Notes: generated by a model not told the origin, from the letters alone. Shown: positions 9,110-47,458, counted from the first letter of the stretch. The stretch: 64,000 nt of DNA from Carpediemonas membranifera BICM (GCA_019828565.1 JAHDYR010000040.1:121970-185969); one strand, 5' to 3'. Made by a program: numbers and translations.

Positions 9110-9679
9110 GACTCCGTGAAATTTCGAGAAACCACTCGCACAGGGGCAGGGGACGTCTTATGTGATGCGGCGATGGGGCATGAGACGCAGGGGGGCTCGG
9201 GGACGACATGGCCTGGGGTGACCGAGTCAGACGAGTCACGACTCCAGAGTCTTGAAGGGGGAAGGATTATAGGCAGCGCCCGGCCCCACGGGCCTTGCAC
9301 TGGCTGACATAGTCGGCCCAGACGGACTGATTGTCCGCCCAGATCGACCAGAACACGTGGTCGCGGATGGCTCTCACGAGGGCCGGCCTGCGGATCGCGG
9401 CACAGAGGCGGGCGGCCCAGCACTCGGTCAGACGGGACTCAGTCTCGCCCAGAACCGTGCAGGCAGCAGGCACGAAGGTGGCCTGCCAGTTGAGGTCCGT
9501 TGCCAGTTGAGCTTCTCAGGCTCCGCCTCCCGCGGGTGCAGGCTGACCACGAAGACAACGTCTGCTGTTCCAGCGCAGCAATACGAGCCGCCTCTTCTGT
9601 AGGCGATGACTGAGGGGTACTCATTGAATTCAATGTTGTCCTTGCTGGTTCCAATCGGACATCAGTCTATCGGTCAACA
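9110..9679 (-). mobile_element. 5' portion of an LTR element: 46-bp LTR candidate (9634-9679), palindromic PBS, gag start (ATG 9624)
   Basis: TGTTG...CAACA termini; palindrome CATTGAATTCAATG at 9622-9635; ORF MSTPQSSPTEEAAR follows; the LTR truncates ORF 9680-10015. Confidence 0.6.
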
Positions 9680-10015
9680 TCACGTCCCCGCAACGTTGAA
9701 GTTGAACCAGAGCGCGGGCGGGAGTACGGGTTCGTCCCGGTTGAGGTAGGTTGACACCAACTTGTCCCACGCGTCAATCTTCTCGGTCGACATGCTCTTC
9801 AGCACAGAGTTCTCATACATTTCAGGCCTCTGGATGGCAAACTGACCCTCGCTGGCGATGTGCTTGCGGTCGTTCTGGGTGACCAGAGAGCGTTGGTTGC
9901 TGGAAAACGAATAGTTGCGTGGCGCCTTAGAGTGCGCGAGGGTTGGAGGAGGTTTTGGAGCAGGTAGGTGTCTCTGTCGAGAACATGATGCGTAGATGAG
10001 CCCCGGCATCCTCAT
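9680..10015 (-). pseudogene. Gypsy gag N-terminal fragment
   Basis: LKSMSTEKIDAWDKLVSTYLNRD resembles LKLPTADAWQDHREQYYAYRSRG of the gag at 36073. Confidence 0.45.
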
Positions 10016-10388
10016 ATCTCCTCATCTCTTGCAATAAACAACCAGGTGCCGACTCGCAGACCCGAGAATCATTACCTTACAAGTGATTAAATTACATAAA
10101 ACTGAAGGAAGCACGACAGGCCCTGGCGAAGTCATTGATGAGTTGGATTGGAAAAAGCCTCTACCAGGCCCGAACAGCGAACCACAGACGCCTGCTCAGG
10201 ACCGCACCTTTTACCTGCCTCCCTGGAGGGGGTCGCGGATGGGGACGCCGATCGGCCTTCCCTGAGTGACATCCTCCCGGAGGAATGGCTGGTCTCCGCC
10301 GGCCGCTTATGATATGACATAAGTTCTTGTTTACATAAATCTCAACAGAATTCATAAATCTCCCCGAGCAATCTCTGCCATATCAGAT

Positions 10389-10882: not shown

Positions 10883-11615
10883 TTAATCAGTTGATGGGTC
10901 ACTGCCCTCCCTGAGCAGCTCGGGGTGAGCGGCCAAGAACTTCTTGGCGGGCGGTGTGTGCTTGACCGAATCGATCGGCTCCCAGGTCTTGTCGGCGCTG
11001 CCGATCCACTTGACTCGGAGGAAACCGGGCTTGGAGCGAAGGATGCGCTCCACGAACCACTCCTCCTGGTCCGTGGCGGCGAAGTAGGCGAGGTCGCCCT
11101 CGCTCAGGTCAGACTTGACCGGGATGAGGTGGGTCAGGTGCACCGTGCGGCGAGGGGCGTCAGCCAGGCGCGGGACGATGACCGCAGAGAATGGGTTCAC
11201 CTCAACGACCTTGAAAGGGCCGGAGTGTCCGTGTAGCTTACTCTCCGTGTGGTTCTTCCGGAGGACGTAGTCTCCGGGCTTGATGGGAACGTGCTGGGTC
11301 TCTACCCTCCCCTGTCGGGTGGACGACTGGTGCTTGACGGCCTTGCGGCAGAGTTTGGCGAGGAGGTTGTCCATGGCTGTGAGGTACTCGGCCACGGAAG
11401 TGAGTGGCGTCTCGGCGGCGTGCTCTGAGGTGTCGTCTGGGCTGTTTATCTGCCGAGACGCGGCGTGCGTGCCGAACAGGAGTTCGAACGGAGTGAATCC
11501 TGTGGCGCTGTGAGGCGTGCTATTGATAATCCAGGCGACGTATGGGAGTAGTGTCGTCGACCAGACGTCGAACGCGTTGAATGAGAGTGCCAGTGTGCGG
11601 AGGTGGCGCTTAATC
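10883..11615 (-). pseudogene. Gypsy integrase C-terminus plus chromodomain
   Basis: NSTPHSATGFTPFELLFG, GPF motif, WFVERIL...VKWIG...TWEP; PPT GGGAGGGCAG followed by TG near 10901. Confidence 0.9.
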
Positions 11616-12110
11616 TCTAACGTCCTGCTAAGGTCCCTCTAGGTTTTCTGTTATTGAATTCTTTGCGCTTGGCAAGTTGGCCTATCAGGGTGACGTGACG
11701 CCACCGGGATACGCGAGGGGTTACCCTCACTGATCCCAGGGGCTTCACCTTCCCTTGTTTGGTTGCCATGCTAGCTAGTTTGTTCTCTTCTCTTTTGTTT
11801 GTTTTTATAATGCTTGATAAGCAAGACTTATGACATACGACGTCTTTCCAACGGGGGAAGAACATTTACAAGAAACCCCTGGTTTGCTATGTAAATATTC
11901 GGGACTAACCGCCACCTGGCATTCCCTGGGTAAGTCGAACTGGCTCGCCTTACCTGACGAGCAGGTACACTGGCCTTGACCAGCGTCGGTCCTGGCGCCG
12001 TCGCTTCCAGCGCCAACTCTTCTGGCATTGTCCTTATCCCCTGTCCCCTGCACATTGCGCCAAAACCCATCACCCGAGGTGATAAATATCAGACACCTGA
12101 TGTGGTGCCA
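10997..12110 (-). repeat. 1114-bp near-identical inverted copy of 62631-63744
   Basis: Reverse complement matches 62631-63744 with about 3 substitutions seen by eye; the ORF track gives near-identical peptides. Confidence 0.95.
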
Positions 12111-12139
12111 GGCCTTGGAGGTAACTTTGATACGACGTT

Positions 12140-13260
12140 CTGCTACCGGGATATGGGGGGTCTACCCCTCAGATCCCAGGAGTATTCTGGCCTGCCAAAG
12201 TCCTTCCAGGTTCCTGCTACTGTTGGTCTCTGTTCATGGTATGCTTGCCTTGCAGGGTAACGTGACGCCTGCTGGAATTTTCGTGGTTCGAAAGTCGGGT
12301 TGTGTGCTCTCCATGCCGCCTTGTCCCTGCCTGTGCATCCTTGTTTACTCATTTTCCCTGGTTCAGCCGTATGGGGCCGCGCGGCGAAATTGCGCAATTC
12401 TGAAAGTGCATCAGCTATATCTCGCCATCGGGTTCCCTGATTTGAGTTTACGCAATGCAGCCTTGCTCATAAAGCTTCTAGAGGCGCCGGTGTCAACAAT
12501 GAAACTATATTGGTTTTCCTTTAAAACGGCGGACGTGGTCTTGGGACCTTCAGCGATCGCTGCGAGGTTTGCTTCGGCCTTCCTCCCCTCCAGCCGATGC
12601 TTCGGATGCTGGGGACAGCGGAAGGATTTGTGTCCGTACTTTTCGCAGATGGGACAAAAAGGGATCCCCAGCTTATTCTTGATGGGATCTGGGCCCGTAT
12701 GGCCCTGGGGAGGCTGTTGGGCCGGCCCCTTATGCGAGTGACTGGGCTGGCCGCCCTGGCGCTGCTAGCTCTTCCTCGTCAGATCTGTCCTGATCCGGAG
12801 ATACGGCTGATGTCATGACGACAGCGGCCTTGACTGACAGAACCAGCGGATGCCGACGCTGGCCGAACTTGAAGAAGCCCGGTGCATCCCGGTTAGGGCA
12901 ATGGGGGCGTGTGTTGCCCGTATGGCCGCAGCCGTTTATCTCGGAGACAATGTTCTCGGCAGAGATTTCGGACAAGTTCGGCAGTTTCAGACGGATAATC
13001 TCTTGAACGGATAAGAGTGGTGATCGGGTGATGCTCCATATGGAGACTTGTTAGTTGGCTGAGGAAAAATTACACGTCATCGCAAAACGAAGTGAAGACA
13101 CGACGCGAGAAGCTGGACAGAAACGGAGGCTTGATGTACGAACAAGCTGAGGGGTGCATTAAGCCTAGTATTAATACTGTGGCAACAAAAGGGGGAAAAG
13201 TGTTTACGTGCCGCAAGTTATATTGTGGCCAACGATACCAGCTATGCCAAGCCAGGCACA
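12140..13260 (-). mobile_element. Decayed 5' half of a Gypsy element: LTR (13178 to about 13260), palindromic PBS, gag, protease
   Basis: TGTG...CACA ends (alternative end 13298); palindrome AGTATTAATACT at 13167-13178; ATG 13159 (IKPPFLSSFSRRVFTSF, gag-like); degenerate Zn knuckles near 12900; FIVDTGASRSF protease near 12490. Confidence 0.75.
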
Positions 13261-13492
13261 TACAGAGTATCTCTGACCTCTGGCGAAAGACAGGCACACT
13301 TTGGAAAGAAAGAAAGATATTTATTGCGCTACTCAGTAAAAATGACTGAATTTGAGTCGATTGATGCGGAAAAAATTGAACGCAAGAAATGGCTGTAACG
13401 GCAGAGGCACGAGCACAGATTGTACGTTTATATCAAGCTAACATGAAGAAGGTTGTTATACAGAAAGTTATGGCGGGGAACGGCGTCGCCAT

Positions 13493-13625
13493 TGTCAGCG
13501 CGGCACTTCAATCAAATATTTATTTATTTGATTGATGATCCGATCCGATCCCCGGGCAGGGTCCCGAATCGTCTTTTTGTTTTGCTTGTAAAGCTTCACC
13601 CCCCGTTTCGTCTGCGAAACGAACA
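13493..13625 (+). repeat. Solo LTR (133 bp) of the family of element 41159-45981
   Basis: Reverse complement of the LTR at 41159-41287 plus a 4-nt TATT expansion; TSD CCAT on both sides. Confidence 0.95.
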
Positions 13626-13965: not shown

Positions 13966-16739
13966 TGTGGTGTGACTCAGGTCACAACAGGTATTATCCT
14001 GCACATTTGGTGCAGGATATGGCAGTATTCTCTCTAAAGTCTTTATTGGTTCCCTTGTGTCCAGGACTGACCACAATGATATCATTTCTTCCGGAGGAGA
14101 TGAGCTCAACGGTCCTGGCGCAGGAGAATCAATATAAGCAACATCAATTGACATTTTCACCAGAACCAATTTCTTCCGTTAGCGCAATGCAAATGTCTCC
14201 GCGGTGTCGACAGTTCAACTGAAATTCGCAAGCAACAACAAGTCTAGAGCGTTTAGTTCAACAAGACCATCAACTTCCACCAATGCACATAGCATACAAG
14301 CAAACAACAGGCCAATACCAGTAACCAAGCTTCAATAAGCTCCAATAAACGATACAGCTAGCTATCCTAGCCTCATGACATTCTTTTCATTAACCAACGG
14401 GGGGGGGGCGCTTAATTTACACAATGTTAACGAGGAAGCTAGTGTAAGTTAAACGTGAAGTCCTCTCCGCTTACCGAGGGAGAAGGAGTATACCAGTCGT
14501 AACTGGTACCGTGCCGTCGGATCCGGCGGATCCGAACCTTGCGCCATTCTGTCCGCATAAACTGCGTGACTCGCCTGACCGGCGAAACACCTTTTGCCCG
14601 GAGTGCCTGACTCTCATCTGGTTGTTCTCTTTTCCCTGCATGAAAAAAGCTTGGCAAATGCATCGACGCGAAAATCGGTCAGCATGGCCCTGCGCAGGTA
14701 CTGTCCCCGCACGGACCTCCCTGTTTTCTCATTTTTCCCTGATCGTTTGTTTTGGGGCTCGCGGCGAAATGGCGCGGTTCTAAAAATGCATCGCCATTTT
14801 CATGCCACACCGTCCCTGGATTTTGGCCGTTGTTACGCCATTGTACCCATGTTCAGTCAGCACCGGTGCGCTTTAACGTTACATGTACATTTATAACTCG
14901 TCGAAACTACGTTCGTAGTTCATCCAATCGGTCTCACCAGGAGGTTAATCCTCGGTGGAGACGGCCAGTGAGCTGTGTCGAACAACGGAGCATCTTGCAT
15001 GCTCTGAGTAGGCGCAGAGGCCAGGTAGGTTTTGTATAGCACATGAGTGTCTACAAGCCTTTGAGCTGTCGTTCGACATCTCTATTTTGCACCGCCTTGG
15101 CAGTTAGCCAGTATAGGGGTGTCGCTTACTTACATAGGGATCCCAACAACTTGATATATATCGCGATCCAGACCAGTAGGTCTGTGGACGGGTGGTAGTG
15201 GTCAGCTGAGCGTTGATCCACGGTGCGGTGAGTCTGAGGGAGTGCACGCCCGACGACAACACGGCTGTGTGTGACACCTTGGGACCGCCATCTAAGGTTC
15301 GGGTAATGGATGCTTTGCCGACGGGCTCTGCACATCTGAGCGTCCGGAAAGGCCATGTGGCAAGTACGGTTGTTACAGAGCATGTTCTGAGTCAGCTAGC
15401 GAGCATGTATGCTCCTAGCACACGAGTGTCGTTCAACACTCTTCTATTAAGCTATCAGGTCTGAGCCAGGCCGATTAACGGCGCTCGCTGACAGCGATTA
15501 GTCATGATTACACACCAGCGAGTTAGAGCTGAGCCCAGTCGGGTGCTCATCGCTGTGCTGTTGTCTTGAATGGTTGTGAGCCTAGGCCATCGTTCGATAG
15601 GTAAGCCCGACTCATTCATAAGCCTGAATACACGGCAGGCAGTCTATGATAGACTATGATGGAACATGAGCCGCAACGAGTCAGTGGGCCAGGGTTGAAA
15701 CCCGCAGTCCGACACGTCATCCCGGAGAACGGTTGTGTTCGGAGCAGTACCGTCGTTTGAATGGTATATGTCCAAATGGTGGACGGGTTAGACCGGCCCC
15801 AAGACCACAGTTGGAGGCGATGGGGTGGCCAAGCTTACGGTTAGAGGCTTGACCGATGAGACCCTGCATCGAGGACCGAGTTGTCCTATAGATGAGTGTC
15901 AGTAATAGAGTAGCCTGCTACCTTAAGCTTTTTGCTTAAGTGTGGTTGGATACGTCCCAAGAGACAGTCCCTTTTCAAAGACATACAGCGTCATGCCATA
16001 CGTGGCTATTATAGAGCCGTCAGAACAAACGCGCCTGACCAGTCTTTCGACAGGTTTGGTCGCTTCGTCTGGACCTTGAGCCCGACACGAAATGTTGCGC
16101 ATGCACAGCGCAGTCATCTGTCGCCACAAATCGAACTAGTGTGGCTTTCTCCGGCTTCACCTTTACGTGAGCGCCGGGTGGTTCTCTTCCCAAACCCCTT
16201 TGAGCGCTTCAGACAGCTCAGATTTTACTCAGCAATGACCTTTTTTCTTCCGGTTTCGGGTTTTTTCTTTAGTCTTCACCAGGTGGTTTCTCTTTCTGAT
16301 TCGATCAGTTTCTTCGCCGCCGCAGCAACTTCCCAATCATTGCCTACATGTGTTACGGCCGTCACTTAGACGACCGTGGAGGGGCAGTAACATCTACAAC
16401 CCAGCCACCACATCAGTTCCTTCATCGCAGCAAGTACATCGGACAGCTTAGAGCCGAACGGTCGGCCGTGCGGTCCACATGTGGTGTCGGAATATCTTTT
16501 TGATATCTCAAAACATTATGACATCGAGCAACGAAGGTTCCGTCACATGTCGCGTCACCAGACGCAACAGCTCACCTTACATACTTTTGTCAAGGCTCAT
16601 CTCTATCAAGATGAACCTTGGAGGGGCAGTGTGGTGTGACTCAGGTCACAACAGGTATTATCCTGCACATTTGGTGCAGGATATGGCAGTATTCTCTCTA
16701 AAGTCTTTATTGGTTCCCTTGTGTCCAGGACTGACCACA
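13966..16739 (+). mobile_element. Non-autonomous LTR retrotransposon (element A), 110-bp identical LTRs
   Basis: LTRs 13966-14075 and 16630-16739; TSD ACAT; PPT GGAGGGGCAG; palindrome AATGATATCATT at 14075-14086; interior has only faint pol relics. Confidence 0.95.
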
Positions 16740-18019: not shown

Positions 18020-18947
18020 CCTTGGTGTCGAGGGCGGGTTTTGTCATTAAAGCTACCTTTAGCGTATTCGGCAGCGCCACAGAGCATAACCCACTGGTCG
18101 CCTCTCTCGACCAGCTCCACCCCCTCCGGCACGTTGTAGGGCCCAACCTCGTCGTGCCACGTGCCTCTCTCGCTCTCGGCCAGCTGCATGGCCCGCAGCT
18201 CATCAGCATCTATGTTGCCTTGGGTAAAAATCATCGTGTTTGTCGCTCCCTCGTTTTCGTTGACCATAACACAAAATTAGCCCCGTTCCCGTGCTGTTCA
18301 GCAGAGTGAACGACTTCCCTTGACTCGGCCCGATCCGATTGCGACCAAATCTTCTCCGACGATTGGGGTCGAACAATCATAAATTGGAGAAGTTTGTGAT
18401 TTGCTCGGGGTGAACGGCCCGTGAGGGGAGATAAAGGCAACAAGAAGTTGGTACGTTTAATGCCGCGGCAGTGCTGGGGGAGTGAATGTACACCATAAAT
18501 GGAGTTACGTAATTCGCACTGCCTTTCTCGATAGCTGGCCAAGCTTGGACGGCTGAACGTGAGGGACGAACGCAAATCACCTGCGGACGATCTTCGACAC
18601 TCCTTTGGGTCGTTCAATCGTGCATCGGATGATCCTTTAGCGCACCTGGGCGTCCCCAGGCACTGGAGATTATACTGACGGGCCAAGGAAGCGTTCGGAA
18701 AAAACTTTGTCTGTCAGTTAGTCCAATTACTGGTACTTAGGGTTTGGTTGGCGGTTTCTCGTTGGATAGCGGCGTGGAGCGTCAAATTCTTTCGCTGTTG
18801 TGCTCGGGGGCACTCTGGGCTTCGTCTGGCGTGTTCTCCGAGGGTACCGGTCGCGAGGCTTCCGTACATCAGACGGATCTGGATGTTTGGGCTCAGCAGC
18901 GCGGTTCTCTGTCCGACGCTCTACTGTCTTTGGCGCCGCGTGCTTTT

Positions 18948-21900
18948 CTAGGACGTCGGCTGATACAGTAGTTCCTGCCCCTCTCCCGGGGTCGGTCCTC
19001 GGTGGACTAGACTCGTGGTCCCGTCCTCCTGGGGTTTCCCGTGGTGAGGGCTCCTTGCGCTTCTCCTCCAGCTCCCCAGTTGGGGTGGCACCGAGTCGGG
19101 AGGGTTAGCGGGCGGATCGAGTGGATGCCTGGGTCGACGCTGTCTGCGGTACTTCGCGACTCCGGGGAGCTTAGCGAAGCCATCATTGGCGTCAATGAAC
19201 TTTGCAAAGGTGTCTCTGCCAGCAAGCTGGTCGATGTTGATCCACGTGGCCTCTGATTTGGTCATGCCAGCCCAACGTACGAGCATGCGGTAGGGCGAAC
19301 TGCCCCGTTGCTGTTCGTAGTCAAGAATCTCTTCCGGCACAGACCGGTAGAAATCTTGTGCAGCGATACTACGAGCTTGCTCTTCGGTTAGGGCTTGCAC
19401 TGGTGACCAGTACAGGGAGGAGCCGTGGCGAATGATCTTGACAGTGTCCTGGATGAGGTCTTGGAGTTCGTACCTGTCTCTGGTGAGGGTTTGGAGGACC
19501 CGACACGGGCCCCGTACTGGCAGGTCCAGACGGCCTCTGGCCCTGGGTTCTAAGGAGATGTACACATAGTCACCGGGGGCAGGCCTAGGCCCGGCGACGG
19601 GGAGATGGTCGTCTTTCCACTTGCTCCTCTCAGCCAGCGCGTCGTTGACTGTTTTCAGCAGTCTTTTCGCCCGGTCAATAGTCAGTCTGGGGTTGTTCTG
19701 ACTGCGCTTGAGGTCGGTTGTTGTGGCGAGTAGAGCTGCGTGGGCTTGGAAAGGTGAGAGGTCCCCGAGTGGAGCGGATGGGGTATCGTTGACTGCGGTC
19801 TGGGCGTCGCTCAGCACTTGTGTCCAATCCTCATCTCGCACTTCGTGTACGAGCTCTCTGAGCGCCCGGTTGACGGACCGGATCACGTTTTCCACGGCCC
19901 CGTTGGCTTCGTGGCGCAACGAAGTGGTCACGTGGTGGTCGATGCCGAGTAGTTCAAGCTCTCTTGAGAAAGCTAGTCCGAACTGGGACCCGCTATCGGT
20001 TTGGACTTGTTGGGGTAGCCCCCAGTGGCGTATGTAGCCACGTTTGAGAGCGTTCAAGGCCTCCGCTGTACTAGAGTTTTGCATTGGCTCCAGCACTGTG
20101 AAGCGAGTGGTAGGCTCTTTGATCACCAGGACGTGAGTGAATCCTTGGTGCTCGGGGAGAGGACCTAGGGTGTCCACGTGCAAGTGATGGATGGACCCGA
20201 CAGGTGCGCGGGAGTCTGGCAAGTGTCGCTGGTCGATTGGGACCGGCTCGAGCCGGGACTTGGAGCAGATTGGACACGCGAGCAGGCGCTCGGCGATGTC
20301 GTGCTTGATCCCGCTCCAGAGCGTATCGTCCTGCTTCAGCCGGCGGAACATGGCTTTGGCCTTGCGGTGATACTTGCCGTGTGCGCGGTCGAGAAGGTCC
20401 TGTTTCGCCTCTTCCGCAAGCTGATCTGGTAGGTCGGAGTCTTGGGAGGTGTGGCTGAGGCTACACAGGTACGCGGACGGGGTGATATCCACTGAGGGTC
20501 GCGGCCAATACCGTGACAGTGTGTCGGCCACAATGTTGTCGGCCCCCGGAATGTGCGTGATGGAGATGTCGAGGTCAGCAATCTCCGTGAACCAGCGACG
20601 GACCTTACGGTTGTTCGTCGCCGAGGCGAGGAAGGTGAGGTTGCGGTGGTCAGTCTCGACATCGACGTGATGTCCTTGAACGATGTCCTCGAACTTGAGG
20701 AGGCTGGCAACGACGCCATAAGCCTCTTGCTCAATTGTAGGCCAGGCAGCCATCGTGTCGTTGAACTGCTTCGAGTAGAACGCGATGGTTTGTTCCGACC
20801 CATCGTCTGCCAGCTGGAACAGCTGGGCTCCGATGCCGTGTACGGAGGCGTCTGTCCGGAGACGGAACGGCCTGTCATAATTGGGATGAGTGAGGTCCTC
20901 GGGCTCCGCGATGATGGCTTTGAGGGTCTCGAACGCTTTCTGATGGTCTCGCGTCCAGGACCACTGGGTTCCCTTGCCGAGGAGGGTGTTCAGAACCCGG
21001 GTCTGGTCTGCCATGTGTGGTAGGAATGGCCGGAGGTAGTTGACCAGGCCGAGGAATGAGCGCAGCTCACGTGGGTTCGATGGTGGTTTGATTGTAGCGA
21101 TGGCGTCGATGCGGTCCTGTGAGATGTGGACACCCGACTCGTCTACAAGAAGACCGAGGATCTTGGCGCGCTTAGTGCCGATGATAGACTTCTTGGCCTT
21201 CAGACGGAGGCGGCATTGGGCACAGCGGGTGAGGAACCGGTCGACCCGATCATAGAGTTCCTCAGGAGTTCTCCCGAGGACTACTGCATCGTCAATGAAG
21301 ACGAACAGCTCGTCACGGTCGATCGAGTCTTGGAAGACCTTGGTAACTGCCCGCTGGAAGGCGGCTGGCCCATTGCGCACTCCAAACGGAAGTCGGTTGA
21401 ACTCATAGAGTCCGTTGGGTCCCTGGAATGCTGTCAGGTGTCGGGAACTCTCGGCAACCTTCAGCTGGTGGAACCCTGACGTAAGGTCGAAGGTCGCGAA
21501 GTACTTGACCCCACGGCACTTCTCCCTCAGTTTGTCTGGCGACAACATGGGGTAGGCGTCGGCTCTCGTAACTGCATTCAGCTGGCGGTAGTCAACGCAG
21601 AAGCGCCAAGTATCGTCTGGCTTCCGGATCAGCAGAACTGGAGCTGCCCAGTCCGACGACGACGGGCGGATGATGCCCTTCTGGAGCATGTCGCGGATGC
21701 CGTCCCTAACCGCCTCAGTCATCTTTGGGTTCTTGTGGCGGTACGCTGCCCGAACTGGGATGCTGCCAGGGTTGAGGACGAACTCGAACTCGCCCAGGTC
21801 GGCGCCGCCTGGATGGGGGTCGCCGAATGTGTTCTGAGCGACGTGCCTGCCCAGGAGGTCCTCAAAGCGGCCACGTACCTCGCTAGGGAGGTCGTCGGAG

Positions 21901-23498: not shown

Positions 23499-23740
23499 AG
23501 AGAGAGTTAATCGATTAATTATTGCTCTTTCAGCGTAAAAATGAACAATTGGTTTTGATTCATTCAAAGTTCTGCTCACAAATTGAAGAGAGTGAATGGT
23601 CGTAACTGATTCAGAGAGACTGAACATAGCAACACTTCTCGGAAGTGAAATGTCTATAGCAAATTGCACGCGTAACGGGCCGTTGCCGCAATGTCATCTA
23701 TGATATCAAGGCCAATAGAGCGAAATGCTCTGGAAAGAGA

Positions 23741-24524
23741 GTGAGATCAGCTACCAAGATGAGCCCAGAAGTGACGAAGTATGTACGTGACTATGTTCTC
23801 CAGAATCCGGCTGCTCGGCTTAGCGACATAGCCACTGTCGTGCAGCTGAAGTTCGGTATTTCAGTATCGCTATCCAGCCTCTCCCAGACGATACTACACA
23901 AAGAGAAGCTTACGCTCAAGGTCGGTGGCACCAGATGGATGGAAAGGAATCCAGAGGAAGCCTGGCGTTTCCGTTCATTCTACGCAACGGAGATTGCCCC
24001 GTACTATTCCACCGATCAAGTCTTCTTCCTCGACGAGACTAGCTTCGACCCCCTTCACCTGGCGGTCAAGCGAGTGCGCGGCCCAAAAAGGCGTTAGGAC
24101 ATATGCTTGCCGCAAGGGTGGCCCGGTCGGCCAGCGTTACTCGGTGTGCGCGACTCTTGGCGTCGAAGGGATCAAGCACAGAGTCATAACGACAGGTACA
24201 TTTACTGCTGACAAGTTTCTAGACAATACCATAGAGTTGCTGGGGATGATACCGGGGTGCGTCCTCGTGATGGACAATGCCTCCATACACGCACTCAAGG
24301 GCAAGCTTGACGCCCTAATGCAACTCTATGATGTCCGCATCGTCTTCCTCCCTAAGTATTCGCCATTCTTGAACCCAATCGAGGTTGTGTTCGCGTGGAT
24401 CAAGGCGTTTGCTCACACGCACTTTAAGGACACGGGGCGTTTGCCGGCAATACTCGCCGCCTTTGATGACGTTGCCAAGAAAAACATAAGAGGTCTCTAC
24501 GAGAAGCATGGATATTCCCATTAA
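23741..24524 (+). CDS. IS630-like DDE transposase (DD35E by my count), frameshifted near 24088
   Basis: FLDETSF, VMDNASIH and LPKYSPFLNPIE motifs across two frames. Confidence 0.9.
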
Positions 24525-24530
24525 AGCTGT

Positions 24531-24980
24531 TTATTCTCTCAATTCTTGGCTGGATGCAACAGATAGAGCTGGCTGAGAAGGTTCGCTGCGCTCTGCTTCC
24601 TCCAAAGACGCAAGGAACGAGATAACGCGAGAGTACCACTCGGGCTTCACTGGGATGGAGATAAAGCCGTGCGACACTTCTCTCCGCGGTGCAGGCTGAT
24701 AGTCAGAGGATGAGGGCGTCGAGTGCGGCTTCAGGAGACCGGCGGGAGGATTAGCGACAGTGGCATGTCCTCGCATGATCTCGAATGCCCATGCGGCAAT
24801 CATCCTTCCAGGGAGAGCCCGTGCAATCTCCGAGTTCTCCACCAACGTCCTCATTCCCTGTGTTATCGCGGAGTTATCAACATTACCATCCTCAGCTGTA
24901 GATAAAACATCTTTGAATGGGCATCCAGCCCTGTTGTGGTTCTTGCAGCTGCACAGGCTACACGTTACAGTTCTCACCAT
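24531..24980 (-). CDS. Accessory ORF with N-terminal CCHC zinc knuckle inside the DNA transposon
   Basis: CSLCSCKNHNRAGC is C-x2-C-x4-H-x4-C; lies between the TIRs, convergent on the transposase. Confidence 0.65.
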   Translation of the reverse strand: MVRTVTCSLCSCKNHNRAGCPFKDVLSTAEDGNVDNSAITQGMRTLVENSEIARALPGRMIAAWAFEIMRGHATVANPPAGLLKPHSTPSSSDYQPAPRREVSHGFISIPVKPEWYSRVISFLASLEEAERSEPSQPALSVASSQELRE

Positions 24981-25182
24981 CTGTCGTCAATCAAAAAGTT
25001 CCAGGCCTAATCAAAATGATGTTCATTTTTAGAGTAAAAGAGCAATAACGTTAATGTGATTTGCTCGGGGTGAACGGCCCGTGAGGGGAGATAAAGGCAA
25101 CAAGAAGTTGGTACGTTTAATGCCGCGGCAGTGCTGGGGGAGTGAATGTACACCATAAATGGAGTTACGTAATTCGCAAGTT

Positions 25183-34300: not shown

Positions 34301-36186
34301 TACTGCCGGGATTCCGGGTCCAGTGGGACCTGGAGGAAGGCCTTCGACAGGTCGAGTGTGGCGTAGTACGCCGAGCCTTCGAGCTGATCGAGTAGGTCCT
34401 CGATAAGCGGCAGGGGATGCTCGTCTGGCTCCGTTATGTCGTTAAGACGGCGGAAGTCCAGGCACAAGCGGATGCTGTTGTCGCGTTTGACTACAGCAAC
34501 GATGGGGCTGTTGTAGGGGCTATCAGATGACTCTATTATGCCTAAGTCGAGCTGCTGGCTTGTCTGCAGGCGTATTTCATCCCTGAACTGCCAGGGAATA
34601 GCGATAAGGAGGCGTGTTAGTCGTTTTCCCCTCAGTTAGACGAATCTTGAAGGCTTCCAGGGCCGAAGGCTCACTGGACAGCGGTTCAAAGACCCTATGA
34701 TGTTCTTCGACGATTTTGGTGACCTCCTCGCGGAGGGAAGGAATCTGAACGTTGAGTTCAAGCGGCTCCTCTTCAAGCAGATTAAATTCCACCTCACTGC
34801 CTTCGTCGGGTTCTTCCGCGACAATGTCTGACCCCACGTTAAAAGTGATCAGGCCCAGCTCGAGGGAGGAGGGTAGGCCGAATATGATGTCGTAAGGTAG
34901 GTGTCGCAGGACGAGGAACTGGTCAATGACCGAGAGTTTGTGGCCAGTTCTTGAGCGGCCAAGGCTCATCTCGATGGTGCAGATGGCCTCGACGTTGACT
35001 ACCTGTCCGCTTCCCACACGGACGCGGCCTGAGTAAGGTCGCATGGGCAGCCCTAGTGTCGTCACGAGTGCGTGAGACACGAAGTTCGCCGTGGCGCCAG
35101 AATCAATCAGTGCGCTGCTGTGTGATACCTGGTTATCGTGCGGGATCTCTACCTCGATCTCGGCAGAGGCAGAAGACTTCCGTCCCGCTCGATCAGTCGC
35201 CATAACGTGTAGACAATGCTCATACTTACCACTTTTACCCGCACGCTTCTTCGCGAAGCACTGTTCTGCGGAGTGGCCTGACTTATGGCAGTACGAGCAT
35301 GTCACTGTGTTCGTAGCCTTGCCCGGGGCGCGGCTGGTCTGGTGGTTAGCCGGGGGTGCGCGCGCCTCGTCGAGGTGTCGCGTCTCGCGCTGGGTCTGCT
35401 CAATGTGGCGCGACTGCTCGAGCGCCGCCTTGAACGCGGCTTGGAGGTCGTTGCGCGGAGCAATGGTGTTGACGCGATCACGGAGACGCTCCGGTTCAAG
35501 GCCGCCGATGAACTGCCTCACCAGGCGCTTAGTCGGAGGCTTGACATCAGCGCAGTTCTCCAGCTGACGTTGGTACTGGAAGACGTAGTTCAGGGCGTTT
35601 TGGTAAGTCGAACCACGCTTCTTGCAGGTAATGCGGGTGAAGGAGTCCAAGGCGTCTTGCTTATCAAGGGGCTGGAAGATGGCGTTAATGCGACAAATGA
35701 TAGCGACGCTTGCTTGGTCGTTCTCGAGGGCTGGGATTGGAACCGGGAGCTGCTCGGGAGCTTCATCTTCGTCGTCGTCGGAGTCATCGCTTGAGGAGTC
35801 GCTGTCGGTGCCGTCGTTGTTCGCGTCACCTTGGATAAGCAGCGGTACGTCATCACCGGCGGGTGCATCGTGATCGGGAACCTCGTACTCTTCGAGGGAA
35901 GGATCCCTCAGCTTGAGGACCTCCCATACGTCACGCGCGATGAGGAGACGAATGGCCAGGGAGCCACCGCGTGAGCGATACGCGTAATACTGCTCGCGAT
36001 GGTCCTGCCAGGCGTCGGCGGTCGGGAGCTTTAAATAGGGGGCTACGAAAAGGTCGGGAACTTGGAATTGCATGGATCCAGTAATTACTGTGGTGCAGCC
36101 AAGAAGAAGAGGAAGTGATTTAATAAGGAGTCAACCCTCGGTGGGAAAAAGGCCTAAACTAAAATATACCAATTAAACGCACTACA
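31385..36186 (-). mobile_element. Chromodomain Ty3/Gypsy element C, 98-bp identical LTRs
   Basis: LTRs 31385-31482 and 36089-36186; TSD TATTC; PPT GGGGGCAG; palindrome CAGTAATTACTG at 36079-36090. Confidence 0.96.
32066..36073 (-). pseudogene. gag-pol of element C with frameshifts (about 34580, 34210) and a stop (32699)
   Basis: CSYCHKSGHSAEQC, LIDSGA, MPFGLRNA, YIDD, TDAS, HGGTEGH...CPTC, chromodomain YIVDKIIGH...ISWQGY. Confidence 0.93.
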
Positions 36187-38444: not shown

Positions 38445-38546
38445 TGTAGTCAATATTAATATCTACCAATATCCCCGGGAGGGTCCAAACCTCTTTTTAC
38501 TTGTAAAACCTATCTCTTCCAAGACTACAGTACTAGTACTTTCCCG

Positions 38547-41500
38547 ATGGATAGAGACGGGAAGAACCAAGCACCACTACTCAAGGAAGCTACTTTCAGG
38601 GCTTTCGTGACGTTTACTACATCATTGCGTGACTTCAAGGCCAGAGGTGGCAAGGCGAAGCTCCGGAAGCTCATCAGTCCGGAGATACAGTCCTACGTAT
38701 GCCAGGTGTTAGGCTTAGAGGCCCTCGAGGACGTCCCGCTTCCTCAGGGTGATCAACAGGGCGACCAACCTTCCACAACATCACGCAAGGTCAAAGAGAG
38801 GACTATTATGCAGCGGCTCGCTGCTGCCTTGCGTCCCACCAGGAAGGAGCAATGTCTGAACCTCATCAGGCTCCGCATCGCGGCATTCACGCCACTCGAG
38901 GTTTCGAGACTGAACTCGCAGTTCAACACCTTGTTCGAGTGCCTTGACCTGGTCGAGGACGACACTATTCGTGAAGCATACTTGCGGGCGTTCGCCGTGA
39001 AGGGCCAGTCCCTTTACTTCAGACTGAAGGAGCAGACCTCGGGGCGCTCACTTGCTGAGACCCAGCAGTATGCCATGAAGACGGCGCGCGACGTAGTCGA
39101 GTCTGCGGAGTACCTCGCTCCGTTCGCTGAGGCCATTCATCCCGACCAGCCGCGCCGTCCGGCAGCTCCTGTGCCAGGCGCCCAACCCCAACGTGCGGAC
39201 AGCCGTGACCGGCGCGACCGCCCATACGACCGTCGTGACCGCCCGTATGACCGCCACCGCCAAGATCGCCCAGACAAGCGGTCCCGCGATCGGGCTCGCC
39301 CCACCAGCACCATGCCGACCTGCTACAACTGCGGGGGCAAGGGCCATTTTAGTCCCGAGTGCCGGAAGCCCAAGGTCAAGTGCGAGAAGTGCGGGCGCGA
39401 GGGCCACAAGAGAGAGTTCTGTGACCGTATAAAGGTCCAGAACTATTCTTATTTGTCTTGTTTCGCGGCGTCTAGCAAACGCAGGGCGCAGGCTCTACCG
39501 ATTGTATCCGGATCTATATACAGGACCAGCACAGAGTCGATGTTATTCGACTGTGGCGCGTCAGCAACCTTCATATCGCCGCAGGTAGCTGAGAAGTCCG
39601 GCGGAAGGATCCTGCATTGTGACCCGGTCGAGGTGACGACACCGGCTGGAGTCATCACAGTCGACCAGACTGTTCCGATCGAAGTAACCTTTGCTAAGTC
39701 AGCTCTTATCCCCCGTGGGTGCACCTTCACTACCCGTGCGTATCTTCTACCCTCAGAGTATGATTTAATCATTGGATACCCTGATATGGTCACCCTAGGG
39801 ATCCTCCCACAGATTGACGACTGCGAGGGGTCTGACACCCAAGACGCCGAGCAGGCTGAAGACGTCTCAACGGTCATTACTCCCCAGAAGCTGAGCCTAT
39901 TCACCTTGTCTGACAAGTCATCTTCCCTTCAGGACAGACTGCTCGCGCGGTTTGACGGCCTGTTCGAGGACAGAGTAGGGCGTCCGAGTAAGCTCATCCC
40001 TTACGATCTAGTCTTGTCTGATGATGAACCCGTCTTTAGCCGCGAGTTCTTCATGCCGCCGGAGAAGAAGACACTTCTCCAGGAACACCTTGACGACCTA
40101 TCCCGGCATGGCTTCATCCAGCCATCAACGTCGGCTTACTCCTCACCGGCATTCTTAGTCCCAAAGGGGAAGGACCGTACCCGGTTCGTTATCGACTTCC
40201 GTTTGGTCAACGCGAAGACTCCCCCATTCAACTACCCTATCCCGATCATAGAGGATTGCCTTGCTAGGCTTAGGGGTAATACCATCTTTGCTACGCTCGA
40301 CTGTAAGGCAGGCTACCATCAGGTGGCACTGACGGACCGTTCCCGTCCCCTGACCACTTTCGGGACCCCCCTCGGACGGTTTGAGTACACGACTATGCCC
40401 TTCGGTCTGCGTAACGCTGGCTCACATTTCCAGTGGGCCATGGAGCAGGCTTTCTCCGACCTGATCTCGGCGGGCAAGTGCCTGATTTACATCGATGACA
40501 TTATTGTCATGGGTCGGGATGAGCCTTCGTACATAAGGAACCTATGGGACGTCCTGAAACGCTGCCAAGAGTATGACCTACACTTAGGCCGCGATAAGTG
40601 TGTCTTCGCCGCGGCTGAGGTCGAGTTCCTGGGTCGACTCGTGTCCGGAGACACCGTGAGGATTGCCGAAGACCGCATTGACGACATTAAGAAGCTGAAA
40701 CTACCGACCAGCAAGCGGTCCGCACAGGCACTCGTCGGTTTCCTCAATTATTTCCGTGACTTCGTGCCCAACTTCGCGTCCCGAGCTCATCCTCTGTTGC
40801 AGGTGTCGGCTGGCAAGGCCGAACCCGGTGGGCCGGGTCAGCAAGCGGCCCTGGGCGACGTTATCGCCGAGCTCCTTAAGCGGGTCTCCCTCGTTCACTT
40901 CAAGACGGACGCGACACATGTCCTCATGACCGATGCCTCAGACGTGGGATGCGGCGCCGTATTACTACAGGACGGGCAGCCGATCGCTTTCATGTCCCAC
41001 GCATTCTCCGCGGTCCAGACTAGGTGGAGTACCACAGAGCAGGAAGCCTACGCAATCATCCTGGCAGTCCAGCGTTGGCGGAAATTCCTCTCGTGGACTC
41101 ACTTTACCATCCGTACTGATCATCGCAACCTGCTGTTCATGGCCAAGTCCATCAACCCTGTTCGTTTCGCAGACGAAACGGGGGGTGAAGCTTTACAAGC
41201 AAAACAAAAAGACGATTCGGGACCCTGCCCGGGGATCGGATCGGATCATCAATCAAATAAATATTTGATTGAAGTGCCGCGCTGACACTTCCCTCCCAGT
41301 GGTAACGACCACGAGTAACGGGCGCGGCGGCGAGGACTGGTCTATGATATTTCATCCGAAACCCATCAAATGCTATGGTTTGATTAGATAGTTGAGCGTG
41401 AAGACGAACAACTCCATTGAAGGAGGTTATTGAGCTAAAGAGCTCCTAGGTGCTGAAAATGACCTCCATTGGCCTCAATAGGCCCTCGTTGGCGAGATAC

Positions 41501-44500: not shown

Positions 44501-47458
44501 TCCCAGGCTCCGTAGCGTGTCGGTCCCAATCAGAACCTTCTGAGATTGTCCGGGAATGACGGCGGCGATGATCGTGGTGTGGACCGGGCTACCGACTAGG
44601 GTGGCAGTGAGGGAGGTCTCGATGAACTCATCCACAGATAGGGTACTGCCGAAGGCCGGGGTGGCCGTGATGGGCTCTCGGGCGACGAGTTTGGCGCTCT
44701 TGGCCTCAAGAAGCATGTGCGCGAGAGGCTCGGTGATACACGTGACGGAAGCACCGGTATCGATGATGGCGCGCATAGAAATGTCACCGATCGCGGCTTC
44801 CACGGTAAGAGGTCCCGTGGACGCGGAGGTATCACCGTCTAAGAGGAAAACCTCATGATCTTCGACCTGTTCTCCATTATCGAGGGTGTTCACCACGCGA
44901 GGGGCACTTTGGCGAGCGGTGTTGCCTCTGGCGGGGCGAAGGGATCCATTCTCTCGGTTCCATGCTCTGCGGCCTGCGCGATAATCGGGAGCCCTGAAAT
45001 TTCCAGGGGATTCGCGTGGCTGGGCGAAGGTCTGGCGTCTCTGGTCGGGATTATTCCGCGGCTGATCCTGGCGGCCCGGGTTGGGTCCGGTCAGCGGCTT
45101 GGGACGATAGGGGGTTATGGGGCCCTGACGCTGCGGCCCAGTGGGGGCATGGCCCCGACCCGCGTAGTATCCGAAGCGCTGGGCCTTCTCGCGGGCCTCG
45201 TCATCTTCGTCCGCGATCTTGAGAGTTAGCTGGATGAGGTCCTGCAGAGAGGACGGACGTTCTACACGTTGGGCATAGTCAACGGCATCTCTGAAGGCGG
45301 CGGGCCTCAAGCCCTGCGCAAAGATGCGCTGATGAGCCCGAGAGGCCGACGTGGTCTCGCTGGCGGCCGGAACGGTGGTATCGGCCGGGGGCTCTGGTTC
45401 GGTGCCGTCAGTGTTCCCGGCGAGGATGGATTCGTCCGCCTCAGGGGTAGCTGGCGGGGTGGCCATGAACTCCGCAGAGCCCAGGACATCTGTAAACGCA
45501 CGAGCATAAGCTCGGATAAGGTTGGCGCGCGACACGGCGTGGTTCGCATCCACCTGGCACTTCACGGCCTCCAGACGGAGGCGGAGGTCTTGAGGGTCTC
45601 GGGGCGCCAAGAGCTGGTTAACCCAGCGGATTACGTCGTCGTCGGACTGAGAGGCCAGCGAAACGTTGTGCTGGACCTCTAGGGCACCTTGGAGTTCAGC
45701 GTCTAGGAAGGCAGCGTATGTGGCTGCGGGGTAGAAGATTTTGAACTGGATCATCGTTCTCTTGAAGTTGGCCCAGGTCTTTGGGCTCAATTCTTGTAGT
45801 GCTAGTTTAGGAACCGGCACAGGAACGTTCTGCATCAAACTAGTATTAATACTGTTCGTTTCGCAGACGAAACGGGGGGTGAAGCTTTACAAGCAAAACA
45901 AAAAGACGATTCGGGACCCTGCCCGGGGATCGGATCGGATCATCAATCAAATAAATATTTGATTGAAGTGCCGCGCTGACAACCCCAAGGTCCGTCGATG
46001 GTACGACCAACTGGCTGACCTCGATTTTACCATACGTCACGTTCCGGGGGTTGACAACGGGGCAGCAGACGGCCTCTCTCGCGTGTTCGCTAACACTCTC
46101 GATACCCAAGTCGCGGACAAGCTGCAGAAGGCGCACCACTTTGCCGGGGCCCACTTATCCGCCTGGGCGACCAAGAACCTTCTTCGAGACTGGGGCGTGC
46201 GCGTCCGCCAGAAGGACGTGGACGACTACATCGCCAAGTGCCCAATATGCCAGTTAAGGCGTAAGCCCCCAGCCTCATCCGACGCGGGTTTGCACACCGC
46301 GGTCGAACACCCCTTCGACCGAGTGGCCATGGACACTATGTCCGCCACCCCGTGCACGGTCGACGGTACTGTGCCGGGGCGAAGAGATTGGAACATTTAC
46401 ATAAACTGCGGACGTGGATGCCTTATGACAGTACGACCTATAAGTATGTCCTCGTCGTCATAGACATGTGCTCACGTTGGACTGAGCTGATTCCGCTCCA
46501 GACTACCCGAGCGGTCGAGACGTCTAGGGCGTTCGTCAATAACTGGGTCCTCCGGTATGGCGTACCAAAGGTACTGCAGACGGATGGGGGATCCCAATTC
46601 GTCAACGCGGTCTTTAACGACCTGAGTGCCCGACTCGGGTTCACGACGAGGAAGACGACGGCTCACCACCCTCAGTCGAATGGTTTAGTTGAGCGAGCGA
46701 ATGTTTCGGTGAAGTCCATCCTGACAGCGCGTCGTTACCAGTTTAGATCCAATGATTGGGTCCACAGCTTACCGATTGCTCAGTACCTTGTTAACTCGAC
46801 CCCTCGAGTCCCTACTCGACTCTCCCCAGCCGAGATCCTGTATGGTACCGAGATGCGGGTGCCGAAGGACATCACCTTCATCGCGCCGAGCGAGACATAT
46901 ATCGTCGACCAACAGGAGGACTGGCTGTCTGAGGCCAAGGCGTACCGGCTCATGGCTGCCGAGCGTATTAAGAGCAAGCGGTTACTACAACAGTATAGGC
47001 CGGACACCCGCGCTACTGTCGCGACTCCCTACGTCCTGGTGGCTTACCCCGACAGACCTCCCGACAAATTCGCCGCCGGGCTGCGTGGCCCAATGGCGTT
47101 AGTGTCTGTGCACCAGGAGTACAACAAAGTTGTTGCATACACTGTGCGAGACCTTGAATCACTGAAGCAGTTCCGAGTCGACGCCTCCCGAGTCCTCCCA
47201 TTCGATCACGGCGACATGTCCTTGGAGCAAGTTGCTCGCTTGGCTAACACAGTGGCGGCCGAGTACGTACCGAGCAAGATCGTGAAGTCCCGGCCCGAGT
47301 CTGGTCCGGTCGAGAGTCGCGAATACCTGGTCGAGTGGCAGGGCTATGAGCCAGACGAGGCGTCGTGGGAACCATTCGAGAATGTCGATGGCTGTGACAA
47401 GTTTGAAGACTTTCTTGAGCAGAGAGGCTTACACCGTGCTGCGCACTCCAGGCAGTAA
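38547..47458 (+). CDS. gag-pol of element D, interrupted by two insertions; 38547-41158 + 45986-46369 + 46435-47458 restores one frame of 1339 aa
   Basis: Two CCHC knuckles, FDCGA, YIDD, TDAS, SINP|KVRRW junction, HHFAGAH...CPIC, DG|TTYKY junction, YLVEWQGY...SWEP chromodomain. Confidence 0.93.
41159..45981 (-). mobile_element. Chromodomain Ty3/Gypsy element E, 129-bp identical LTRs
   Basis: LTRs 41159-41287 and 45853-45981; TSD ACCC; PPT GGGAGGGAAG; palindrome AGTATTAATACT at 45842-45853. Confidence 0.96.
41642..45835 (-). pseudogene. gag-pol of element E with frameshifts near 44245 and 43290
   Basis: IIDTGA, VPFGL, YLDD, TDAS, HNTAVGH...CTEC, WRGPF, VRWKGYEPEEDSW. Confidence 0.93.
46370..46430 (+). 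repeat. 61-bp solo LTR-like insertion in the integrase of element D
   Basis: TGT...ACA termini; GTAC duplicated at 46366-46369 and 46431-46434; removal restores the integrase frame. Confidence 0.88.

Follow-up and report, generated by a model that had tools for sequence, protein, structure and literature searches.

To our knowledge, the question of how LTR retroelements prime their minus strand has only two established answers, a host tRNA (whole or half) and self-priming of the Tf1 type, and we know of no demonstration of priming by the pairing of two copies of an element's own RNA.

In Tf1, RNase H cuts an RNA:RNA duplex to yield an 11-nt self-primer (PMC7175516). Ty1/Copia elements of the GalEa group carry CHSeq1 (Conserved Hairpin Site; Donnart et al. 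2017), which occupies the 9 nt after the 5' LTR and reads CTGATCAGT or CTAATTAGT behind the LTR's final A (PMC5445492). Its authors proposed CHSeq1 as a replacement for the PBS (primer-binding site) and left the mechanism unassigned (PMC5445492). This palindromic site of the fungal GalEa Copia elements is the closest precedent for the elements of Carpediemonas membranifera BICM that are described here. Both groups lack a tRNA site, and the 10-bp palindrome that CHSeq1 forms with the final A of the LTR has the architecture, and follows the rule, of the 10-bp class found here. GalEa elements are, however, Copia elements, with integrase before RT, while the present elements are Gypsy, with the order RT-RH-IN. 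Two sequences account for 85% of GalEa families, whereas about 16 palindromes of 10-16 bp occur here. In GalEa, a near-complementary CHSeq2 lies 12-41 bp downstream and forms a hairpin with CHSeq1, whereas no such repeat rises above chance in the present elements, the best downstream matches at all 24 sites being no better than those of shuffled sequences.

Tf1/Tf2, Tj1, Sushi and Tcn1-type elements, which are chromodomain Gypsy elements, are independent of tRNA, as the present elements probably are too, and use a primer of about 11 nt that comes from their own RNA, pairs at a site adjoining U5 and is released when RNase H cuts an RNA:RNA duplex (PMC7175516, PMC4600332); the length of the duplex is comparable, 10-14 bp here. 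The Tf1 site, however, is no palindrome: its partner is a second sequence, which lies inside the LTR and makes up the first 11 nt of the transcript, whereas the site described here pairs only with itself. SM-Tcn1 (PMC2864245) and Tcn2-5 of Cryptococcus are further elements for which no PBS has been found. Retroviral dimer initiation sites, such as the HIV-1 DIS, are also short self-complementary sequences in the 5' leader, and they let two genomic RNAs pair, but they are 6-nt palindromes in a hairpin loop downstream of a separate tRNA PBS, whereas here the palindrome is 10-16 nt long, lies in no loop, abuts U5 and stands at the PBS position itself.

With canonical tRNA-primed Ty3/Gypsy elements, the present elements share TG..CA LTRs, target-site duplications of 4-5 bp, a polypurine tract before the 3' LTR and the order gag-PR-RT-RH-IN. 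The pol order PR-RT-RNase H-integrase was found in Pfam scans. TG..CA ends with target-site duplications of 4-5 bp are present in elements A-E and in L001, L002, L008 and L012-L017, L015 being an exception to the CA ending with an LTR that ends ..AAA, and all elements have polypurine tracts of the GGGAGGGAAG, GGAGGGGCAG or GGGGGGGAAG type. They differ from the canonical elements in lacking the TGG.. tRNA site, which is present in ordinary form (TGGCG..), in place of a palindrome, in the more distantly related Gypsy elements L029 and L030 that served as outgroups, and in the exceptional shortness of their LTRs (43-129 nt) and leaders. A Chromo domain (Pfam), sought at the C-terminus of integrase, exceeds the cut-off in L014, is weak in L001 and was not detected in B, L002, L008 and L018, and the domain is present in most relatives from other samples; the tree of elements took in this clade alone. 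The first-pass annotation of this DNA, made from the sequence alone, knew of no earlier description of palindromic primer sites. For Gypsy elements and chromoviruses none was found in the literature searched, but the palindromic site of the fungal GalEa Copia elements had been reported in 2017 (PMC5445492).

Elements and palindromes of the window

The window, the whole 64,000-nt stretch of DNA analysed (GCA_019828565.1 JAHDYR010000040.1:121970-185969), contains elements A to E. Their LTR ends were refined by setting the 5' copies against the 3' copies and by taking account of TG..CA termini, target-site duplications of 4-5 bp and polypurine tracts. Element A, on the plus strand, has a 110-nt 5' LTR with TG..CA ends at 13966-14075, which is identical at 110/110 positions to the 3' LTR at 16630-16739, and its target-site duplication is ACAT. 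The first base of its palindrome, AATGATATCATT (14075-14086), is the last A of the LTR. The purine tract GGAGGGGCAG precedes the 3' LTR and no palindrome follows it. Element A is non-autonomous, 2.8 kb long, and gag-pol similarity is absent from its interior; like the non-autonomous L016-short, it has identical or near-identical LTRs and target-site duplications and retains nothing but LTRs, palindrome and purine tract.

Element B, on the minus strand, has 124-nt LTRs, the 3' copy at 18395-18518 and the 5' copy, delimited by comparison of the two, at 25055-25178 (124/124 identical; target-site duplication AACT). Its gag-pol open frame of 1573 aa (18948-23669) contains RT, RNase H and integrase (Pfam). 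A Tc1/mariner-like insertion of about 1.5 kb (23522-25045), with terminal inverted repeats and a TA duplication, splits the palindrome of this element. The left part, consisting of the LTR's last A and TTAACGTTA, is located at 25046-25055 on the minus strand, and the remainder (AT) lies at 23518-23519, past the duplicated TA. The first-pass annotation had reconstructed the site, and the reconstruction is correct, since L001, an uninterrupted 98% copy of element B elsewhere in the genome, carries the perfect palindrome ATTAACGTTAAT, which reads TTAACGTTAATTAATCG behind the CA of the LTR.

Element C, also on the minus strand, has 98-nt LTRs and the target-site duplication GAATA. Its 3' LTR is at 31385-31482, its 5' LTR, as delimited by 5'/3' comparison, at 36089-36186, and its palindrome, CAGTAATTACTG, at the verified 5' LTR end (36079-36090). 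Element D, on the plus strand, has an 85-nt 5' LTR at 38445-38529, identical at 85/85 positions to the 3' LTR at 49274-49358, and the target-site duplication CCGG; an ATG follows 6 nt beyond its palindrome, AGTACTAGTACT (38529-38540), and the palindrome is absent behind the 3' LTR. Nested within element D is element E, on the minus strand, which has 129-nt LTRs at 41159-41287 (3') and, by 5'/3' comparison, 45853-45981 (5'), the target-site duplication GGGT and the palindrome AGTATTAATACT at the verified 5' LTR end (45842-45853). A further LTR copy of the E family, 97% identical, is found at 13492-13625 on the plus strand and is not followed by a palindrome.

Two more palindromes, both on the minus strand, have less certain surroundings. 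At 13167-13178, AGTATTAATACT stands behind ..GCCACA at the plausible 5' end of a fragmentary element, with a weak gag-like match downstream (12763-12933, minus strand) and an LTR flank of which the genome holds a single further copy, a partial one. At 9622-9635, the 14-bp palindrome CATTGAATTCAATG stands behind ..ACAACA, a putative LTR end only, where the flank is single-copy and neither gag nor pol lies alongside. All seven palindromes are thus present where the first-pass annotation placed them. Its statement that they mark seven of seven identifiable 5' LTR ends holds for the five elements A-E, whose LTR ends are verified, and is overstated for the site at 13167, which is only plausible, and for that at 9622, which is unverified. 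The absence of the palindrome after 3' LTRs and solo LTRs, which it also claimed, is borne out. What it took to be constant, a centre 5-6 nt from the LTR end, is wrong; the constant feature is that the palindrome includes the last A of the LTR.

Distribution and regularity of the palindrome

The elements were defined from LTR pairs first and the palindromes scored afterwards. In 12/12 distinct families of this genome, a perfect palindrome of 10-16 bp takes in the final A of the 5' LTR, and such a palindrome is absent behind the 3' LTR in all 12. Seven contigs from other samples, which represent six families with 32-36% pol identity, all have the palindrome. Perfect palindromes of at least 10 bp number 275 in 259 kb of sampled DNA and 299 in the shuffled sequence. 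Chance was considered as the source of the palindromes beside the 5' LTRs and is excluded, because this background, equal in density to shuffled sequence, amounts to about 1e-3 per position, yet in 12/12 of the families ascertained by their LTRs a palindrome starts no later than the last base of the 5' LTR, against 0/12 for the 3' LTR.

Every LTR element of this clade that was found in the window and the 20 loci carries the palindrome. The remaining direct repeats there, considered as counter-examples, are not TG..CA LTR pairs (L007 6717/9394; L017 57/2605; L019 2838/7683; L011 1805/7811; window 4288/8076), and every other pol copy examined is truncated at its 5' end. The genome-wide statement rests on these roughly 260 kb (20 loci plus the window) and on counts of 1,300-1,700 pol candidates. 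The regularity noticed in the first-pass annotation is real and reaches well beyond the window. The trait marks a deep clade, rich in families, in a free-living protist and several environmental samples; a look-up in the protein Atlas yielded nothing further on this clade.

The GalEa-like rule, that the site is palindromic once the LTR's last A is counted, holds at 25/25 sites. Measured from this A, the palindromes are 10, 12 or 14 bp long, and some are longer through chance extension. There are about 16 different palindromes in all. Pairs 1-5 from the centre are complementary at 25/25 sites, with two to four pair types per position. Beyond the last base of the LTR, pairing falls to chance (5-9 of 25 sites). 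Between sister families, such as L023 and L028, the differences are changes on both sides of the palindrome. That symmetry and not sequence is conserved, as first proposed from the window, is therefore well founded, with compensatory changes at each of the five central pairs. Base pairing itself is what is selected.

The site as a probable primer site

As is established for retroviral reverse transcription, it is the position of the primer's 3' end that determines where the U5 of an LTR element has its 3' boundary. Since the palindrome lies at this boundary, it occupies the place where the minus-strand primer must sit. A PBS complementary to the 3' end of a tRNA (TGG..) was sought beside the 5' LTR. 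As the first-pass annotation had stated, none of the sites begins with TGG and canonical tRNA sites are lacking; all of the sites are palindromes. In the genome, 63 tRNA genes were located, and one tRNA gene lies within the sampled DNA. The exclusion of a tRNA primer rests on the lack of TGG, on the diversity of the sites and on the inability of a cloverleaf to hold a perfect, loop-less palindrome of 10-16 nt. The primer must also be encoded by the element, because some 16 palindromes would require as many matching host RNAs.

There is, moreover, no room for another site, since the ATG is so near the LTR. It starts 13 nt past the 53-nt LTR of the L017 family, and in most families it lies 1-31 nt after the palindrome, with the ORF starting within 1-6 nt in some. 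In some families nothing but the palindrome separates a 53-nt LTR from the ATG. No conserved stem encloses the palindrome, no separate PBS was found and no conserved TGG motif follows it.

We consider it probable that the palindrome serves these elements as the site of minus-strand priming, in the role that a PBS plays elsewhere, and that it acts by self-complementary RNA pairing and not by binding a host tRNA. Because it is located where other elements bind a host tRNA, reverse transcription would probably start there by the pairing of two copies of the element's own RNA. Two co-packaged genomic RNAs would anneal antiparallel through the palindrome, forming an RNA:RNA duplex of 10-14 bp whose edge coincides with the final base of U5. 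This duplex would then be cut endonucleolytically, at its 3' edge or right beside it, to leave a paired 3'-OH that faces the end of U5 in the partner RNA, and extension from this 3'-OH would copy U5-R to give minus-strand strong-stop DNA. The cutter, at a guess by analogy with Tf1, would be the element's own RNase H, and the exact place of the cut is likewise a guess. Since the duplex is symmetric, mutual priming is possible: both RNAs would prime on each other, and each primer would be shortened to the 10-14 nt held in the duplex as RNase H digests the R-U5 that has been copied. The plus strand would start at the polypurine tract, which is an ordinary one, and copying of the short RNA primer would regenerate the site. 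Dimer priming of this kind is consistent with all of the evidence and is the best explanation of it. More tentatively, the clade may represent a third way of initiating reverse transcription, in which RNase H nicks both strands of a symmetric PBS:PBS duplex and each RNA primes the other, so that one palindrome of 10-14 nt would serve as dimer linkage, primer and primer-binding site.

A palindromic site would carry a cost, in that the plus-strand strong-stop DNAs could anneal with each other. If the last base of the primer pairs with the A of the LTR, one ribonucleotide must stay, or the cut must lie one base inside the duplex, for the CA end to be formed. In HIV-1, one ribonucleotide is left behind.

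Other explanations and significance

Retroviral leaders dimerise their RNA through short palindromes, as has been discussed for GalEa (PMC5445492), and the homodimers predicted for the present sites are stable, at -10 to -22 kcal/mol. The palindrome might accordingly be a signal for dimerisation or packaging only, while the minus strand has a different primer, for instance some host RNA of short complementarity that has gone unrecognised. This is unlikely: the retroviral sites lie in hairpin loops downstream of a separate PBS, whereas here the palindrome abuts U5, pairing ends exactly at the last base of the LTR, and the gap between LTR and ATG holds nothing else in some families, with no conserved TGG motif behind the palindrome. 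Dimerisation and priming are compatible with each other, and it is only the claim of separate priming that sets this explanation apart.

Less probable still is that the palindrome is a symmetric site, on RNA or DNA, to which a dimeric protein binds (Gag/nucleocapsid, integrase or a host factor), perhaps for initiation that is assisted or primed by protein. Homodimeric binding proteins typically use palindromic DNA sites, and the present sites resemble restriction sites (EcoRV, ClaI, HindIII, SpeI, BclI and other cores), but about 16 sequences have symmetry alone in common and close families differ by paired changes, so that a protein that reads sequence would need a new specificity each time. 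A perfectly paired centre with a sharp outer limit is the pattern of a helix.

The first-pass annotation had also allowed for a fold-back, in which a cut in the RNA at the palindrome's 3' edge is followed by the folding of the palindrome on itself, so that it primes on its own U5. The 3'-OH would likewise land at the U5 boundary, and the longer palindromes can make stems of 5-6 bp. The four central bases, however, would form the loop of such a hairpin and be free of any need to pair, yet these two central pairs are complementary at 25/25 sites, with four pair types. The predicted hairpins reach only 0 to -2.8 kcal/mol, against the energies of the homodimers given above, and ten of seventeen do not fold. 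The pattern points to a duplex rather than a hairpin, and we give the fold-back very little credence. Classical self-priming in cis of the Tf1/Sushi type, with the 5' end of the transcript folded back onto the site, is the least credible of these explanations in spite of a possible affiliation with chromodomain Gypsy elements (Chromo over the cut-off in L014, weak in L001), among which self-priming is known or predicted for the Tf1/Sushi/Tcn1 groups (PMC6317226, PMC4600332). In a comparison that covers transcripts starting within the LTR, no LTR holds the complement, which would be a second copy, of its own palindrome, the longest matches being 4-5 nt, as in shuffled LTRs, and the duplex energies lying within the shuffled range (11 families), in agreement with the earlier remark that such self-priming is not visible here.

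Annotation tools that demand a PBS matching a tRNA will miss or down-rank elements of this kind, for which a palindrome taking in the LTR's final A is a simple diagnostic. For the GalEa observation the present elements supply a much broader and cleaner set of data, in which the palindromes are many and different and a second repeat is lacking, and the question becomes directly testable. If dimer priming is true, it would also account for the so far unexplained palindromic site of the fungal GalEa Copia elements and for the ability of fully autonomous elements to manage with LTRs of 43-54 nt and leaders of 12 nt. The clade appears to show a third design of minus-strand priming, with a covariation as clear as that of a structural RNA helix, and the extreme compactness of its members, whose LTRs can be as short as 43 nt, is relevant to the minimal cis-requirements for retrotransposition.

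LTR elements of the window

Self-comparison of the window reveals five LTR pairs, and the elements that they bound are of the Ty3/Gypsy group, since their Pfam domains run in the order aspartic protease, reverse transcriptase (RT), RNase H and integrase. The exact LTR limits are based on comparison of the 5' and 3' copies, with TG..CA ends and a matching target-site duplication required. Elements A (LTRs 13966-14075 and 16630-16739; duplication ACAT) and D (38445-38529 and 49274-49358; CCGG) lie on the plus strand, while B (18395-18518 and 25055-25178; AACT), C (31385-31482 and 36089-36186; GAATA) and E, which is nested in D (41159-41287 and 45853-45981; GGGT), lie on the minus strand. With 85-129 nt the LTRs are short; all pairs but one are 100% identical, and an ordinary polypurine tract precedes every 3' LTR.

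The first-pass annotation had placed a palindrome at the 5' LTR ends and none after 3' or solo LTRs. At the sequence level, a perfect self-complementary sequence does lie directly behind each 5' LTR of A-E, in the position of the primer binding site; nothing comparable follows any of their 3' LTRs, nor the extra E-family LTR at 13492-13625. The palindrome of B is split by a 1.5-kb Tc1/mariner-like transposon (23522-25045, with terminal inverted repeats TTGCTCTTT..AAAGAGCAA and a TA duplication) inserted in TTAA. Its earlier reconstruction was correct: an uninterrupted, 98% identical copy in another locus of the genome (L001) reads CA followed by TTAACGTTAAT. Because the LTRs of B are still 100% identical, both insertions are recent. 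Two further sites that had been counted as LTR ends, 13167-13178 and 9622-9635, are real palindromes behind ..CA but weaker as LTR ends; the flank of the first has one partial second copy in the genome, with a gag-like fragment about 230 nt downstream of the palindrome, and the flank of the second is single-copy with no adjoining gag or pol.

The related LTRs of D (38445-38529), E (45853-45981) and an element of another locus (L009b, L009 ~2241-2327) have in common a small hairpin-like motif with covarying arms, TTTTAC TT GTAAAA in D and GCTT GTA AAGC in E, which follows CCCGGG.AGGGTCC. An AT-rich palindrome lies near the 5' end of several LTRs (ATATTAATAT, AATCAATTGATT, TTACGTAA); both features may belong to the promoter or the poly(A) signal. 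A stretch of 1,114 bp is present in two inverted copies that are 99.7% identical and 50 kb apart (10997-12110 and 62631-63744), the first overlapping an integrase-like fragment (10916-11626, minus strand). An intron-free host gene of the phospholipase B family (29239-30714; Pfam PF04916, E = 5e-139) sits among the transposons.

Spread of the palindrome

The genome (24.2 Mb, 69 contigs) holds 1,300-1,700 pol candidates, and twenty 10-kb loci around pol matches were taken as a sample beyond the window. Among 12 distinct families ascertained from LTR pairs alone, blind to what follows the LTR, all 12 show a perfect 10-16 bp palindrome in which the final base of the 5' LTR takes part, and none has one after the 3' LTR. 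LTR copies common to several loci, and open frames, add more families. Perfect palindromes of at least 10 bp are not enriched overall (275 in 259 kb, against 299 in shuffled sequence), so that one would occur at the required place by chance in about 1e-3 of families. No counter-example was found in the window and the 20 loci, where the remaining direct repeats are not TG..CA LTRs and the remaining pol copies are without 5' ends. The observation is confirmed and extends beyond the window.

A protein search with the RT-RNase H-integrase region of B matches mainly chromodomain Gypsy proteins on 4-6 kb contigs of public assemblies, together with Carpediemonas membranifera and Dysnectes brevis entries. 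Eight outside contigs were taken, representing six families with 32-36% pol identity. In all seven that include the 5' end of the element, a purine tract is followed by an LTR ending in ..CA and immediately by a palindrome; the palindromes are AGTAATATTACT (L021), AATAGATATCTATT (L022), ACAATAATATTATTGT (L023), AGTGTATACACT (L024, L025 and L026), AGTATTAATACT (L027) and CAATATTAATATTG (L028). In the RT tree these families interleave with those of the present genome on branches of about 1 substitution per site, which makes the palindrome-bearing elements a deep clade. Two more distant Gypsy elements without a chromodomain, from other hosts, served as controls (L029, L030); each carries a canonical site (TGGCGCAATCAGCAGGA.. 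or TGGCGTAGTCGGCAGGA..) 1-3 bases behind the LTR, and neither has a palindrome at the LTR end. Four of the outside contigs (L021, L023, L024 and L028, all Logan contigs) are one element long with ends that repeat by 29-30 nt. A de Bruijn assembler collapses identical LTRs into a cycle, so these repeats are its expected product and no evidence of circular DNA.

The leaders are very short. The first ATG lies 1-31 nt behind the palindrome in most families. In the L017 family it is 13 nt after a 53-nt LTR, and the 4,525-bp element has one frame of 1,488 codons; a tRNA-Arg (CCG) gene (L019:2575-2648) lies about 270 bp from an insertion of this family, within a locally repeated stretch. LTRs of 51-54 nt occur in the L008, L013 and L017 families. 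Those at L002:7456-7498 (minus strand; also in L003 and L004) measure only 43 nt (TGTGGTAAAC..GAGACTACA) and belong to a Gypsy family that is fully autonomous, with an open frame of 1,551-1,580 codons, the 5-bp duplication AACTC and the palindrome AGAAGCTTCT. To our knowledge, the shortest LTRs reported so far are about 77-85 nt, longer than these 43-54 nt. Elements of the L012 family occur in tandem with common LTRs (LTR-internal-LTR-internal), both internal parts opening with an identical palindrome (L007:2717-2728 and 6660-6671). Element A (13966-16739, 2.8 kb) and a short element of L016 (L016:123-2231, 2.1 kb) have identical or near-identical LTRs and target-site duplications. Both are non-coding, without similarity to gag-pol, and retain only LTRs, palindrome and purine tract; they are probably non-autonomous and mobilised in trans.

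Anatomy of the site and rival explanations

When 25 sites are aligned on their centres, pairs 1-5 are complementary in every site, with 2-4 different pair types per position, pair 6 in 22, and pairs 7-12 in 4-9, as expected by chance. All three sites that fail at pair 6 belong to the 10-bp class, where this pair falls one base within the LTR. Without exception the palindrome takes in the last A of the LTR; counted from that A it is 10, 12 or 14 bp long, and the 14-bp class is fixed by the short element of L016 through its AGTG duplication. Since the base preceding the last A pairs at the chance rate (7/25), the selected helix ends exactly at the LTR terminus. As had been proposed, symmetry is kept rather than sequence: there are about 16 different palindromes, and changes between related families are two-sided, as between the sisters L023 and L028 (ATAAT and ATTAT against ATATT and AATAT on the two sides of the centre). 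Many families have the frame GT-core-ACT behind the A, with differing cores.

A fold-back, which the first-pass annotation had offered beside a dimer, is disfavoured, because the four bases at the centre pair in every site, a property without meaning in a loop; predicted hairpins reach 0 to -2.8 kcal/mol, against -10 to -22 kcal/mol for the homodimer. The site does not match the GalEa hairpin: no second near-copy was found within 70 nt downstream of it. A sequence-specific protein site is improbable, symmetry alone being conserved. In priming of the Tf1 type, the site would pair with the LTR; since the complement of a palindrome is a second copy of it, such a copy was sought there. It is absent from every LTR, and shuffled LTRs do equally well in longest match to the site and in duplex energy, in keeping with the earlier failure to see such priming. 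A tRNA primer is improbable, and a self-complementary primer site independent of tRNA is well supported: no site starts with TGG, about 16 sequences would demand equally many primers, and a contiguous cloverleaf stretch cannot complement a perfect loop-less palindrome of 10-16 nt unless the tRNA itself has that palindrome.

Proposed priming by paired genomic RNAs and its precedents

In retroviruses and LTR retrotransposons, the 3' end of the primer for the minus strand determines where U5 stops. Here that primer would thus have to pair with the palindrome and carry the same palindrome itself. Its source is most likely the element's own RNA, the sole plausible origin of a different matching primer in each family. 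The best available model, and the simplest, is a putative scheme of dimerization, cutting and priming. Two packaged RNAs would pair through the palindrome; cutting of the duplex at its 3' edge, or just beside it, would leave a 3'-OH facing the U5 end of the partner, and extension of this 3'-OH would give strong-stop DNA. The scheme being symmetric, both RNAs could prime. Once RNase H had digested the copied R-U5, each DNA would retain just 10-14 nt of RNA, which the plus strand would copy, regenerating the site. The A:U pair that is constant at the LTR terminus would fit a single ribonucleotide remaining on the minus strand, as happens in HIV-1, or a cut one base inside the duplex. In Tf1, the element's RNase H cuts an RNA:RNA duplex between bases 11 and 12 (PMC7175516).

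The earlier view that such a site had no precedent was incorrect. In the nearest published case, fungal Copia elements of the GalEa group have a 'Conserved Hairpin Site' of 9 nt behind the 5' LTR that is palindromic once the LTR's final A is counted; it was proposed to replace the primer binding site by a mechanism stated as unknown (PMC5445492) and has been cited for bivalve TRIMs (PMC6934838). Even though the rule of a palindrome including the final A is the same, the present elements are Gypsy rather than Copia, come from a protist and environmental eukaryotes rather than fungi, have many different palindromes of 10-16 bp, and are without a second repeat. Some chromoviruses have been reported without a recognisable primer site (PMC2864245). 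No palindromic primer site in Gypsy elements was found described in a literature search that covered few subscription journals, an absence that is not proof. Self-priming is known for the Tf1, Tj1, Sushi and Tcn1 lineages (PMC6317226, PMC7175516, PMC4600332). The present Gypsy sites vary what is known from self-priming LTR elements and from the palindromic site of GalEa; the mechanism itself stands a substantial chance of being new.
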